Source: Bugula neritina
Taxonomy: Eukaryota > Animalia > Bryozoa
Length of the DNA stretch: 64,000 nt
NCBI GenBank assembly: GCA_964035545.1
Contig: OZ037767.1
Location: 3,359,680-3,423,679, forward strand
Direction: 5' to 3'
Part shown: one piece after another, positions 9,952 to 35,465 of the stretch
How the letters are laid out: each line of letters opens with the position of its first letter
Numbering within the stretch: position 1 is the stretch's first letter
The notes under the pieces: model-generated
What the model saw: the letters and a program-made list of their open reading frames with translations, nothing else
Told to the model about the DNA's origin: nothing
Databases searched by the model: none
Program-made: the position numbers and the translations under genes

Positions 9952-12900
9952 TTAGCTTGGGGTTTTCTCACTCTCTTCCGTCACCTGCAAGTTGAATAGT
10001 TTTATTGTCAAAATAGATCAAAAAATAAATAAATATATAAATATAATATTTAATATATTTCAAAATACTACTAAGCATCTTAAAGCTTTAGTCAAACACT
10101 TTTCTGCAGATCACATGGGTAATTACAGTGCACCCTCCATATCTCACTGTTCCATTTCTCACGAAATTCCATAGGTCACGAGAAGGGCTTGGACCCTGTT
10201 TTGTGATTCATGTAGGCCTATGTGTATAGGGAAAAAATGGCCTAATTTAACAGATCCATGAGTTAAATATGATATTCTACTATGACACGAATTGAGCTTA
10301 GTGAGATATGGAGGGAGCACTGTTTATACTACGTTCAACCTCATAATTGGGAGTTGTTATCTCAAAATTGTTTAATAGACAACTCCAAATATATACTGCA
10401 GCAGTTAATTTCTTGCTTCCCTGCACATAATTGAATCATTTTAATAATCATATTTAATGAATCTAGAATGTGTTTTTGCATCTGTAATAACATAAAGCAG
10501 TAGGTGTTAAATAAGCAGACGGTGCTAATTCTAATTATGCAATTTTCAGCTGAAATATGCTGAGATTGTGAAATATTTAGTTAGTAGCAGCTGTTAGTTG
10601 GAGCAGAAGCATTGAAATGTATGACTTGGATAGGAGCTGCTATAAACTAGTAATAACTTTACCGAAGGTTCAGGTTCGTCGGAAGCTGAAATGCAAGCAG
10701 AAGATGATAGTAATGTAGGATGACACCAGCTACTAAGAACTTTGTAACCAGACAAGACATGGCAACATCAATTATAGATGTTATGCAATGGCAGAAGTCT
10801 GCATTTGTCCGAACTAATAAAGTAGAATCTTCCTCTACAGGTGCAGATAATTCAGATGAAATAGTTTAAAGATAAAGCCAGACTAAACTAGAGCATCTTT
10901 ACAAGTAAAAATCAATATAAGCAAATTAAACCTGGCAGTTTTATATAAAATGACACACTGGTAAACTATTTCTCTCATACTGGTATATAAGCGTAACTGG
11001 AGCTTAGTCATTTACCTATAACCTACTATACCCGAAGCATAGTTTCGTAATGATGAAAACAGGCGCAAAGCTCAAATATGTGAGAATGCAGTTATAGTTG
11101 TGATGGACAGTTATTATTGTTTCAAATGTTTAATTAACTTTCCAGCATCTGCTGCTGAAATAATAAAATAACATCAGGTGTCTGTATCAACTTGTTAATA
11201 CGTGAATAGCTGTTGAAAGTAATTATAACTCATTAGCTCTCCCTATTCTACCAAAACCTTTAGCTAATTAGCCTTTGGAAGTGTAAAATGGAATGTTTAT
11301 GACTTTACAACTTATTCTGTTGTTCTAAGGTTTCCTATTAAAAGCTCATTCCTAGACTAATCAGCCGAATAAATTTATAAAAAGTCTATTGAGTGTATAA
11401 AGCTCTTTAGATTAATATATATTAAAATGAGTCATAGATAGATTATTTGGTTTTGCTGGTAGTCCAGTAAGCTATTAGCTATGTGTTAAAGGATTGCTCT
11501 ATCTTGTCTAATAAATGGCCATTTAGGTCAAACACACATAATATTGTGTTTTTCTAAGCATGCATTGACAAAAAGCATTTGACCAAAGGTAGAAAAAGTT
11601 AGTTGAAGTTGAGGGTGTAGATTGGTAACAGCCAAAACGCCGATTTTGAAATGAGCTGGGAACTGTGACGTAACAGCGCCAGCATTCCTGCTGGTCACGT
11701 GACTATACAAATGAATAACTATAGAAATATGACTGTGAGATGTGATCTTTCAGCTCGTAATTTGTATATTTATAGAAGTGCAAATGTGAATTCTCTTAAT
11801 CTATAGTTTTTTGACATTTTAAATAACATGTATGTAATAACATTAGGCTATATTTTGCTTGTAACCATTAGAAAAAAGCATTGCAAAAGCATGCATTCTT
11901 TAGGATGAATGCCTGCGATCGATCTAAACTAGGTCAGATTATGCAATATTACGGGCGCACCAAAGTTGACCTATATAGCGCACTGTAACTGCTTGAGCGT
12001 TATTGGTTGATGTTGTGCTCAGCAACCTTGAATACTAGCGTTATAGTTAGCACGTGCAGCATAGTTACTGGCGTTCACACGTCACGTATTAGGCTATTCT
12101 TTTTCATGGCTGAAAATTTTACCTCCCTCAAAATTGGAATTTTGAAAAGCTGTTTTCTAGGCACATATCCCTTTGCAAAGTCACAATTGTTTGCATACAC
12201 ATTAAATTATAGTTCATAATTATAATGTGATTGTAATAAACTAAGATTGAGCAATCCTTTAACAGTTATTGCATTTCTTTATCAGTCCATGGGTTTAACC
12301 TTTGCTGCTGCTTTCCAAAAGTTGATTTCTTGGCAGCTGCTACTCTCCGTGAAGTTACATAACTTTATAGACTCTGTGTCTAGTCATACTAACAGTACAT
12401 GGTGTATGTCAAAAGGTAAATTTGCTAGAGGATGAGGTAAAACTCGTTCTAGATTTTAAACTCTTACAATTCTAGCTAAAATATTTGTATGCTGGCGATA
12501 CTGGTGCAAATGAACCCACCATGCTTTTACTGCTCAGAAACCTGTCAAAAAGTTAGTTTAGCTTTTTTAATCTATTACAAAAGTTGCATTTTGAAAAATG
12601 GCAAAATACGAAAAATGAAGAACTTTGCTAGATTTTAAAGAAGTTTATAATGAAGTAAAAATCAGCTAAGAACTAAAGTTACTTTGCAAGTTTTATTGTT
12701 CTCAGTCGTTTCTACTTATAGCCCAAGAATAGGGTTATCGCAAGCCCAGGGTCCAGCTAATATAAAAAAAACTGAATTGAACTGAGCAAGGGTGCTTTCC
12801 GAAAATAGCTTCTAACAGCCGTTCATATTAATAGCACTAAGATAAATTCCAGAAAGTTGATTGAACAAATTCTGTCAGCTAAGTGCTAGAAATATAATAG

Positions 12901-34800: not shown

Positions 34801-35465
34801 CAGCCTTCAGCATCAGTTATAGTAGGACCGCTAACCTTTATGTAACCAAAGCCAGAGAGCGAATTATACTCATCCTGTGTCAAGGTAAACGTACAACTGA
34901 AGATTCCCTCTTCATTTTCGTAAAAGCTTGGGAAGTTAGTCGAGCTGTATATCTCTCTATCTGATATAGATTCAAATTATTTTTTAATATATGCACACCT
35001 ACTGCCCACCTAATGTATTATAGTTATGAGATTAGTAACACATAGAAGATTAGATGTTTAATTTACTTACTAAAAAAGCTGTTAGCAAAATATTGCCAAT
35101 GATAAGCTGATAATGAATTGTGGCTATAATCATCTAGTCATGTGCAATAAAAGTTTTGAGAACACGCAAAGAGAAATATTTATTATATCATAACATAACT
35201 GTTTAATTTCTATCGTAATTCATATTAAATAAATCAAAATATGTGCCCAGCAATCCCAGCAATCCTGTTTAGTTTTATCTATGACACCGAAATTGTGAAG
35301 ACAGCTTAATCAATTTCTATTAGAGTAGCATCATTAGTATCAACATGGTTTATGTGTGAACACTGCATTATATAAAATAAGCCAGGCTGGTACCATGTTT
35401 GGCTTACCTTGAGCGAATACTTGAAGAACAGATAAACACAAGACTATCCAAGTGAAAGCAGACAT
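31815..35465 (-). CDS. Ig-superfamily protein, copy B (signal, V-like + 2 Ig domains, stalk, short hydrophobic C-terminus; GPI-anchored or secreted candidate), 6 exons, 383 aa
   Basis: Exons (minus): 35465-35408, 34960-34577, 33521-33405, 33143-32991, 32552-32313, 32014-31815. All GT-AG; 1152 nt with no internal stop or frameshift. All six canonical Ig cysteines retained. Ends ...GNSGSTTTMVIGSVVVYILCSEFY-stop. AATAAA on minus at 31497-31492. Confidence 0.78.
33525..34045. mobile_element. 521-bp unclassified insertion at the exon-3 acceptor of Ig copy B
   Basis: Absent from copy A; flanked by a direct duplication of caacta (33519-33524 / 34046-34051). Confidence 0.6.
34116..34340 (-). mobile_element. 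225-bp (TA)n-flanked hammerhead-bearing element (Penelope-like pLTR fragment / non-LTR retrozyme-like)
   Basis: GC-richer insert between two long (TA)n tracts (34054-34115, 34341-34426), absent from copy A. Several internal stems (aaactcaagc/gcttgagttt; gtgact-ctagg/cctag-g-agtcac; cacacctt/aaggtgtg). Hammerhead at its minus-strand 3' end. Confidence 0.7.
34121..34167 (-). ncRNA. Minimal type I hammerhead ribozyme
   Basis: Minus strand reads UCUGUG-CUGAUGA-GGGGACAAAUCCC-GAA-ACAG-CUG-CUGU-C-CACAGA. This gives a 6-bp stem I, complete CUGAUGA and GAAA core, stem II, short stem III and a GUC cleavage triplet (cut between 34127 and 34126). Confidence 0.85.

Follow-up and report, generated by a model that had tools for sequence, protein, structure and literature searches.

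Two adjacent genes in a 64,000-nucleotide stretch of the bryozoan Bugula (assembly GCA_964035545.1, contig OZ037767.1, positions 3,359,680 to 3,423,679; in the following called the window) encode immunoglobulin superfamily (IgSF) proteins with a common ectodomain and different membrane ends. Both genes, A and B, are intact, lie in tandem on the minus strand, and specify a signal peptide, an atypical V-like domain, two C2-type immunoglobulin (Ig) domains and a Pro/Thr stalk, with 87% amino acid identity between the two ectodomains. Gene A continues into a strong transmembrane (TM) segment and a cytoplasmic tail, whereas gene B has neither and ends in a short, weakly hydrophobic stretch. By analogy with CEACAM1 and CEACAM5/6, I consider it moderately probable that the pair represents a receptor and an anchor-switched twin that share their ligand specificity. 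A first-pass annotation, made from the letters of the window alone, had already described two tandem intact genes with this shared ectodomain and this contrast in anchoring, and on all three counts it holds.

The window is AT-rich animal DNA (GC content about 33%). Contig VXIV02003425.1 of the Bugula neritina draft GCA_010799875.2, in which the orthologues of A and B are termed nA and nB, runs collinear with it at 86-91% nucleotide identity; it follows that the window derives from a sibling lineage or close relative of B. neritina, a cheilostome bryozoan that forms colonies. Comparison of the window with itself reveals a duplicated unit of ~4 kb (A 21188-25126, B 31884-36436; 77-95% identity, depending on the segment), which takes in ~1.2 kb upstream of the ATG of each gene. 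Exon limits were set from open frames and splice sites in A and subsequently mapped onto B, nA and nB. The exon plan is the same in the duplicated part of both genes, all GT-AG sites are conserved in the four genes, and the junctions from exon 1 to exon 5 are all in phase 1 in both A and B, as is usual for exons that encode Ig domains. Gene A has 8 exons (23941-15727, 429 amino acids) and gene B has 6 (35465-31815, 383 amino acids), and the models match the database proteins EB796_024516 (P0010, 427 amino acids, A-type) and EB796_024517 (P0001, 382 amino acids, B-type), respectively. Searches were run exon by exon, with P0010 and P0001 as full-length proxies, and the joined coding sequences were used for codon statistics only. 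The first-pass annotation let the locus run from 9952 to 35465. The upper coordinate is the ATG of gene B, but the lower one is not supported: the coding part of A ends at 15727, the orthologous B. neritina model ends likewise, and 9952 corresponds to unannotated intergenic DNA there. Separate promotion of the genes, which it also stated, is an inference from the conserved upstream region that each copy has of its own.

The product of gene A comprises the signal peptide, an N-terminal domain (N-domain) of 127 residues, Ig2 spread over two exons, Ig3, the stalk, a TM segment of 26 residues (Kyte-Doolittle mean over 19 residues, 4.03) and a tail of ~40 amino acids. This tail is acidic, contains no tyrosine and carries the acidic di-leucine-type motif EKNKLL, which suggests sorting or endocytosis rather than signalling through immunoreceptor tyrosine-based inhibitory or activation motifs (ITIM or ITAM). 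An alternative end, obtained by reading through exon 6 (RKRRSSKS followed by a stop), was dropped, as it differs between the species (KS vs. KLEPNLLSQL before the stop), whereas the tail spliced to exons 7 and 8 is conserved. At 21075-21079, two in-frame joins of exon 6 to exon 7 can be drawn (the slash marks the junction): AA/GTCATA with CAG/G results in SSKADPEK, and A/GTAAGT with GCAG/AC results in SSNPEK. The GTAAGT donor is the stronger one and lies 4 nucleotides upstream of AA/GTCATA. The SSKADPEK join agrees with the B. neritina protein as annotated, and the tail in Watersipora is similar to it; alternative use of the two joins is possible. The long introns 6 and 7 of A, together with the 3' flank (14097-21015), are 91.4% identical to B. 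neritina vs. 86-89% in the rest of the locus, and may hold regulatory sequence.

In gene B the stop codon falls inside the former TM exon, at a position that is conserved in B. neritina, and the C-terminus so formed (...GNSGSTTTMVIGSVVVYILCSEFY) has a Kyte-Doolittle mean of 1.43. The ends of B (...TGNSGSTTTMVIGSVVVYILCSEFY) and nB (...IVISSVVVYILSFMFY) both contain a hydrophobic run of 12-16 residues and no basic stop-transfer sequence. Signals for attachment of glycosylphosphatidylinositol (GPI) typically consist of small omega residues, a short polar spacer and a hydrophobic tail, and leave no cytoplasmic residues. The short hydrophobic stretch of B, preceded by the small residues GNSGS, resembles this layout and probably serves as such a signal. 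The B-type proteins of both species have in addition an extra cysteine in the stalk (KFVCGK).

The homology between the copies ends at 21188 in A and 31884 in B, inside exon 6, and past the codons for GSTTT the two are unrelated; for the C-terminal part, the synonymous divergence (dS) is ~0.9-1.0 between paralogues vs. 0.09-0.14 between orthologues. As read from these alignments, B is a partial tandem duplicate with its 3' breakpoint within the TM-coding exon. The A-type would be the ancestral form, because Watersipora has the form with TM and tail and the profile searches returned no tail-less relative. Divergence of non-coding DNA (Jukes-Cantor-corrected) is 0.30-0.37 between paralogues and 0.13-0.22 between orthologues, and the duplication therefore long predates the split of the species.

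However, exons 2-5 show a different pattern. Here the paralogues diverge by 0.079-0.093 and the orthologues by 0.091-0.099, and the dS of A vs. B (0.156) is similar to that of the orthologues (0.14-0.19). In exon 4, A and B are 97.4% identical and nA and nB 98.0%, while identity between orthologues is about 95%. The informative sites in exons group the copies by species 16 times and by orthology 9 times, as opposed to 14 and 246 times in non-coding DNA (12 sites show other patterns; Fisher's test of exons against non-coding DNA, 3e-12), and introns 1 and 4 are strongly patterned by orthology (47:1 and 57:2). Since the exons are this alike between paralogues while the non-coding DNA around them is old, the site patterns indicate repeated, short, exon-centred gene conversion between A and B in both lineages. 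Exon 2 is the most variable and the least constrained, with a ratio of non-synonymous to synonymous divergence (dN/dS) of about 0.5 and 76-84% amino acid identity, and its variable positions cluster at the N-terminus, in the C-C' loop, in strand C'', at the end of the helix and in the F-G turn. Of the pairwise dN/dS values, only that of Ig3 in A vs. nA exceeds 1 (1.25, on 3 synonymous differences), and all other domains stay below it.

Gene B is under purifying selection. Its ectodomain has a dN/dS of 0.36 against nB (52 non-synonymous differences in 792 sites vs. 39 synonymous differences in 234 sites; Fisher's test, 1e-5), and no insertion or deletion separates B and nB in the aligned exon columns, vs. 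41 events in ~4 kb of non-coding DNA. The only change in exon length relative to A is an extra in-frame codon in exon 2. The order B-then-A is collinear in the second assembly (EB796_024517/024516), and the non-coding DNA follows orthology. B is therefore not an uncollapsed haplotype of A; had it been one, the proposal of the first-pass annotation would have been refuted by its own terms. The single available DNA-like run, which is kept as contigs, gives A and B the same word depth (~100-118), flat along B, and the only differing letters and junctions over B stem from contigs of its paralogue A that matched there. Intron 2 of B contains an insertion of ~0.9 kb that is missing from A (33524-34418) and carries (TA)n runs and a very high-copy repeat; at 34018-34395 the word depth of the latter is 37,000-432,000 vs. 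~110 around it, and Rfam yields no hammerhead and no other family in this repeat region at gathering score or E<=1.

The Ig nature of the three domains is apparent from the cysteine pairs Cys42-Cys125, Cys172-Cys211 and Cys260-Cys306, each of which is followed by or contains Y/F-x-C. The N-domain is more difficult to place. Membership of the V-set was judged by the profile match, the strands C' and C'' of the nine-strand topology, the 'pin' (Cys23, Trp41, Cys104), the Tyr corner (Tyr102) and an acidic residue at 98. Both pin cysteines are kept, and the Tyr corner and the acidic residue are present (in E-V-G-E-Y-T-C, Tyr precedes the Cys of strand F by two positions and Glu by six), yet the strand-C Trp is absent in every member of the family (GFGYIK, GFGLI or GFGVI). 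This absence and the extra pair of cysteines (GCLV...EDCE), a putative second disulfide Cys72-Cys96, had been pointed out in the first-pass annotation and are conserved across the family. The G strand FETGSKLEV, which it had called J-like, is present as well and resembles kappa J segments, yet it is a G-strand pattern found in Bugula only and not shared by the family. Motifs conserved throughout the alignment are Y.S.N.P.FY.NE.G.F.C, GFG, the second Cys pair, C..A(Y/F)N.L and G.Y.C..W, with G-x-Y-x-C invariant.

In A, B, P0001 and the metagenome homologues, the N-domain matches no Pfam family at E<=1, V-set PF07686 included, and no other member of the family gives a Pfam match for it either. 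The only Pfam match in the Bugula exons, P0001 and P0010 is a sub-threshold Ig_2 on domain 3, whereas in the Watersipora orthologue XP_067941487 (P0005) domain 3 exceeds the curated cut-off of Ig_2 and domain 2 that of ig. A profile of the N-domain finds Ig domains only among the sequences of solved structures in PDB (Robo2 6e-4, titin 9e-4), while the N-domain of the window by itself finds there only a spurious match to a coronavirus protease (E 0.037). A CUB domain, which the N-terminal G.IYSS.NFPSFY resembles, was considered and rejected: no CUB match is obtained in Pfam, and both the profile and the fold evidence favour Ig.

An AlphaFold2 (AF2) model of residues 20-330 of P0010, with distant homologues in the alignment, gives the N-domain a predicted local confidence (pLDDT) of 85-96 and shows what can be read as strands A, A', B, C, C', C'', a helix, and strands E, F and G; the strands at 51-58 and 61-66 fit C' and C'', and a helix of 14 residues (74-87) sits at the position of strand D. 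A first run with four near-identical rows had been weak (pLDDT 69). The best structural matches of the N-domain by VIA-align are of V-type (ICOS, antibody heavy-chain variable domain, T-cell receptor (TCR) V, CD160 and pIgR; Z 6.0-6.8 over 91-103 aligned residues), and those of domain 3 are C2-type domains, with CEACAM5 B3 at Z 7.2. Foldseek returned almost only variable domains of antibodies, nanobodies and TCRs for the first model, and three-Ig ectodomains (FcRL5, CEACAM6, IgLON, nectin-1, CD22 and SIRP) for the model of the whole ectodomain. The ESM Atlas offered no usable look-alike. I conclude that the layout is V-like, C2, C2, with a first domain that lacks two of the V-set hallmarks, the profile match and the Trp; the V-like label of the first-pass annotation thus has moderate support from the fold and none from Pfam.

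With a profile of the four Bugula N-domains, an exhaustive HMMER search found eight matches in a set of 1.84 billion representative proteins. They comprise fragments from Bugula, the protein of Watersipora, single-exon fragments in four groups from marine metagenomes, and one generic multi-I-set protein, which aligns at strands F-G only. One metagenome contig has the same exon plan as A and B. The relatives are hence bryozoan or unnamed metagenomic sequences apart from that generic protein, which fits the earlier proposal of a lineage-specific IgSF pair without a named orthologue; on the basis of these searches, the N-domain family is restricted to bryozoans. The orthologue in Watersipora subatra (XP_067941487/6) matches A in its architecture, TM and tail included, and is a single TM-type gene; protein and profile searches turned up no tail-less twin. 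A word-index protein search recovered P0001 and P0005 only and missed the A orthologue, whose 90% cluster is represented by an out-of-range fragment of 144 amino acids. Scanning the genome with the N-domain profile resulted in strong matches to A and B only, plus a distant array on contig C9 (3,191,000-3,227,000, minus strand). This tandem array contains at least 6 distant paralogues that are 25-30% identical and share the N-domain motif, and most of its N-domain exons are followed by an Ig2-like exon.

Among known systems, nectins and CADMs have a similar architecture (V plus two Ig domains, TM, short tail), as the first-pass annotation had stated, and nectin-1 is among the Foldseek matches. 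Nectins have a cytoplasmic C-terminus that binds afadin/PDZ, and CADMs have FERM- plus PDZ-binding motifs. In contrast, the tail of A (RKRRSSKADPEKGASEEIDATAEEKNKLLETQDNNKRE, ending in ...NNKRE) has neither a C-terminal PDZ-binding nor a FERM-binding motif, domain 1 differs by the missing strand-C Trp, the putative extra disulfide and the helix, no nectin or CADM is found among the HMMER matches of the N-domain, and JAM-A (E 0.017) is the only related adhesion molecule in the best 60 of 94 PDB matches of P0010; the likeness is therefore one of architecture, not of sequence. The best sequence matches among solved structures are B7-H3 (CD276) IgV-IgC and antibody light-chain V-J-C. The match to B7-H3 (E 6.5e-7) spans the junction of domains 1 and 2, with P0010 98-197 aligned from strand E to strand G of the V domain and on into the beginning of the following one, but covers only ~100 residues at low identity, and the N-domain of the window has no significant PDB match by itself.

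Other parallels are found in paired receptors. As in such pairs, A and B are adjacent paralogues with a common ectodomain and different ends, and their ectodomain exons are homogenised. FcgammaRIIIA (TM) and FcgammaRIIIB (GPI) are recent duplicates with almost identical Ig ectodomains, in which small membrane-proximal/TM changes switched the anchor. They are vertebrate two-domain Fc receptors, and the TM form signals via the FcR gamma chain, whereas there is no evidence of a comparable signalling partner for the bryozoan pair. In primates, gene conversion keeps the GPI-linked decoy receptors CEACAM5/6 similar to CEACAM1, which has a TM anchor (PMC11646289; for the N-domain also PMC2832619). 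The bryozoan genes share with them the IgSF layout of an N-terminal V-type domain followed by C2 domains and the occurrence in one locus of a TM paralogue and a GPI-type one (putative in B), and by fold the model matches few structures better than CEACAM5 and CEACAM6. However, no significant sequence match beyond generic Ig and no orthology was found, an ITIM is absent from the TM form of the bryozoan, its two genes have the same orientation and are not palindromic, and homogenisation has affected the C2 exons no less than the V exon. Siglec-5/14 and Siglec-11/16 are likewise neighbouring genes with near-identical ectodomains due to gene conversion and with differing membrane or signalling ends (PMC5701461, PMC4042635), but they pair an ITIM form with one that has a charged, DAP12-recruiting TM, and not a TM form with a GPI-type form. 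The bryozoan pair would thus be analogous to the CEACAM and Siglec systems without being a member of either.

The reading I favour can be put as follows. A would be the ancestral type I membrane glycoprotein of the IgSF, with its V-like domain, two C2-type domains, mucin-like stalk, TM and acidic, Tyr-free tail. B would have arisen by a partial tandem duplication ending in the TM exon, the truncated hydrophobic end of which would now work as a GPI signal, and would have gained the conserved cysteine in its stalk. Conversion of short tracts has repeatedly homogenised exons 2-5 in both lineages, so that both proteins would present the same binding surface while their anchors remain distinct, and B, if expressed alongside A, could act as its raft-located or sheddable partner or decoy, both binding one ligand of cellular or microbial origin. 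The receptor/decoy idea of the first-pass annotation is strengthened by the concerted evolution of the ectodomain, limited as it is to exons, while the role of decoy itself is conjectural.

Several observations weigh against this reading. A search for runs of the window's species found no RNA run with A or B sequence; the B. neritina gene models are AUGUSTUS predictions with transcriptome hints (PMC7576161). Homogenisation is weakest in exon 2, which encodes the presumed binding domain and has mosaic site patterns (7:4:4), the informative exon sites are few (n=30), and conversion between tandem duplicates can arise without any selective pairing. Only a rule of thumb was applied to the GPI signal, the hydrophobic run of which is as short as 12-16 residues. 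AF2 modelled Ig2 and Ig3 poorly (pLDDT 30-60), and the structural matches, with Z-scores of 6-7, are only middling.

Alternatively, A and B may be ordinary tandem duplicates of a lineage-specific adhesion molecule, sub-functionalised by tissue, stage or membrane domain, with passive conversion and no receptor/decoy relation. I regard this as the strongest competitor, albeit an unlikely one. Tandem genes in the same orientation, 8-10 kb apart, are favourable to conversion, dN/dS is 0.2-0.5 throughout without a sign of an arms race, the A tail has no immune signalling motif, and the top fold matches are generic adhesion or receptor ectodomains with three Ig domains. However, the conversion signals lie on exons while introns 1 and 4 are strongly diverged, and a passive process should respect exon limits less; moreover, the difference in anchors is conserved in two lineages. 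The favoured reading of a receptor with an anchor-switched twin can also be taken further, to a receptor/decoy pair of the CEACAM/Siglec type that arose independently in a lophotrochozoan, with a TM-anchored V-C2-C2 form, a sheddable GPI twin and exon-limited conversion maintained by selection; by analogy this is conceivable, but I hold it to be slightly less probable still than that competitor.

Another explanation, and an improbable one, is that the genes form a locus for colony allorecognition (fusion/rejection) resembling Alr1/Alr2 of Hydractinia, with hyperpolymorphic, homophilic V-like domains, as the first-pass annotation had also contemplated. In Hydractinia, the V-like domain 1 of Alr proteins is missed by Pfam and has a non-canonical 'pin', many V-set models show a helix after strand C'', and the genes are clustered (PMC9546547). 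All of this recurs here in another colonial invertebrate with tandem IgSF genes and an atypical V-like domain, the variable positions of which cluster in the C-C', C'' and F-G regions with mosaic site patterns in exon 2, and the B. neritina genome paper mentions weak Alr1-like matches, though the genes are not named (PMC7576161). The likeness has its limits, as Alr (compared by description, not by sequence) lacks both core cysteines where the bryozoan domain keeps its B-F pair and has lost only the Trp, and Alr tails carry ITAM/ITIM where that of A has neither. Likewise, the large polymorphic Alr cluster contrasts with two bryozoan genes, whose N-domain orthologues are about 82% identical at a dN/dS of ~0.5, Watersipora has a single conserved orthologue, and no alternative alleles are seen in the single available run, although Logan contigs drop variants. 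Allorecognition has no positive support and is not favoured.

That B is non-functional, as a decaying partial duplicate or an artefact of assembly or haplotype, is the least probable explanation and largely refuted, for the truncation without tail exons, the 0.9-kb repeat insertion in intron 2 and the lack of an RNA run with B are outweighed by an intact open reading frame, splice sites conserved in two lineages, the dN/dS of 0.36, exons free of insertions and deletions next to non-coding DNA with 41, a conserved stop position and stalk Cys, collinearity in an independent assembly, and equal word depth of the A and B contigs.

Table 1. Exons and upstream regions of genes A and B, in coordinates of the window.
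Feature	Position	Strand	Evidence
A upstream region in duplicated unit, putative promoter/5' untranslated region (UTR)	23942..25126	-	orthology site pattern 121:4
A exon 1: ATG, signal peptide (MSAFTWIVLSLTVLQVFAQ), phase-1 donor	23884..23941	-	identical junction in B. neritina P0010
A exon 2: N-terminal Ig domain of atypical V-like type, with 4 Cys and without strand-C Trp	22974..23354	-	splice sites, family alignment, AF2, fold match
A exon 3: Ig domain 2, first half	22697..22813	-	Pfam 'ig' above cut-off on Watersipora orthologue
A exon 4: Ig domain 2, second half	22256..22408	-	open frame, conserved splice sites
A exon 5: Ig domain 3 (C2-type) to F-G loop	21598..21837	-	Ig_2 below cut-off here, above in Watersipora; CEACAM5 B3 Z 7.2
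A exon 6: Ig3 G strand, Pro/Thr stalk, 26-residue TM, RKRRSS stop-transfer; donor AA/GTCATA	21075..21318	-	
A exon 7: cytoplasmic tail (ADPEKGASEEIDAT)	19710..19753	-	tblastn with P0010 tail; splice sites
A exon 8: tail end (AEEKNKLLETQDNNKRE, stop), acidic di-leucine-type motif; AATAAA overlaps stop	15727..15779	-	tblastn, splice sites
B upstream region in duplicated unit, putative promoter/5'UTR	35466..36436	-	self-comparison, collinearity, site patterns
B exon 1: ATG, signal peptide	35408..35465	-	open frame, splice sites
B exon 2: N-terminal V-like domain, longer by one codon vs. A	34577..34960	-	
B exon 3: Ig domain 2, first half	33405..33521	-	
B exon 4: Ig domain 2, second half; 97.4-97.8% nucleotide identity to A exon 4	32991..33143	-	
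B exon 5: Ig domain 3	32313..32552	-	
B exon 6, last: G strand, stalk including the additional Cys (KFVCGK), small residues GNSGS, short hydrophobic C-terminus (MVIGSVVVYILCSEFY, stop), GPI-signal-like	31815..32014	-	

The DNA around the pair differs between the assemblies. Between B and A lies a degenerate (TA)n/(TATAA)n tract of 2.5 kb (25863-28375, GC content about 2%), of which only ~300 bp is present at the matching place in the B. neritina draft, due to either expansion here or collapse there. A dispersed repeat of ~225 bp, probably a small mobile element, occurs at 24681-24906 and 52317-52538 of the window and at 11308-11532 and 20102-20324 of the B. neritina stretch compared with it (78-91% identity); its placement differs by species, being upstream of A here, and in intron 2 of nB and past exon 6 of nA in B. 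neritina. The upstream neighbour at ~37600-45700 is the orthologue of a B. neritina gene of 503 amino acids with a weak match to ChitinSynthase_IV_N, and both assemblies have it in collinear position.

Next to nothing is known of the molecules by which bryozoans, as colonial animals, manage immunity and recognition, and the locus described here provides a concrete, conserved candidate. Twins with a TM and a lipid-type anchor that are kept alike by conversion have otherwise been described mainly in immune receptor/decoy pairs of vertebrates, and the breakpoint in B illustrates how the type of anchor can change in a single step when a partial duplication stops within a TM exon. If the receptor/decoy pair did arise independently, it would imply an arms race between host and microbe in bryozoans, with either a pathogen or the bryostatin-producing symbiont as the opponent, and it would add a previously unprofiled V-like type of Ig domain, which lacks the core Trp, has a second disulfide and carries a helix instead of strand D. 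Should expression and a common ligand be shown, the pair would stand as an example of paired receptors that evolved convergently in an invertebrate, and could offer a handle on how Bugula recognises microbes, symbionts and neighbouring cells.

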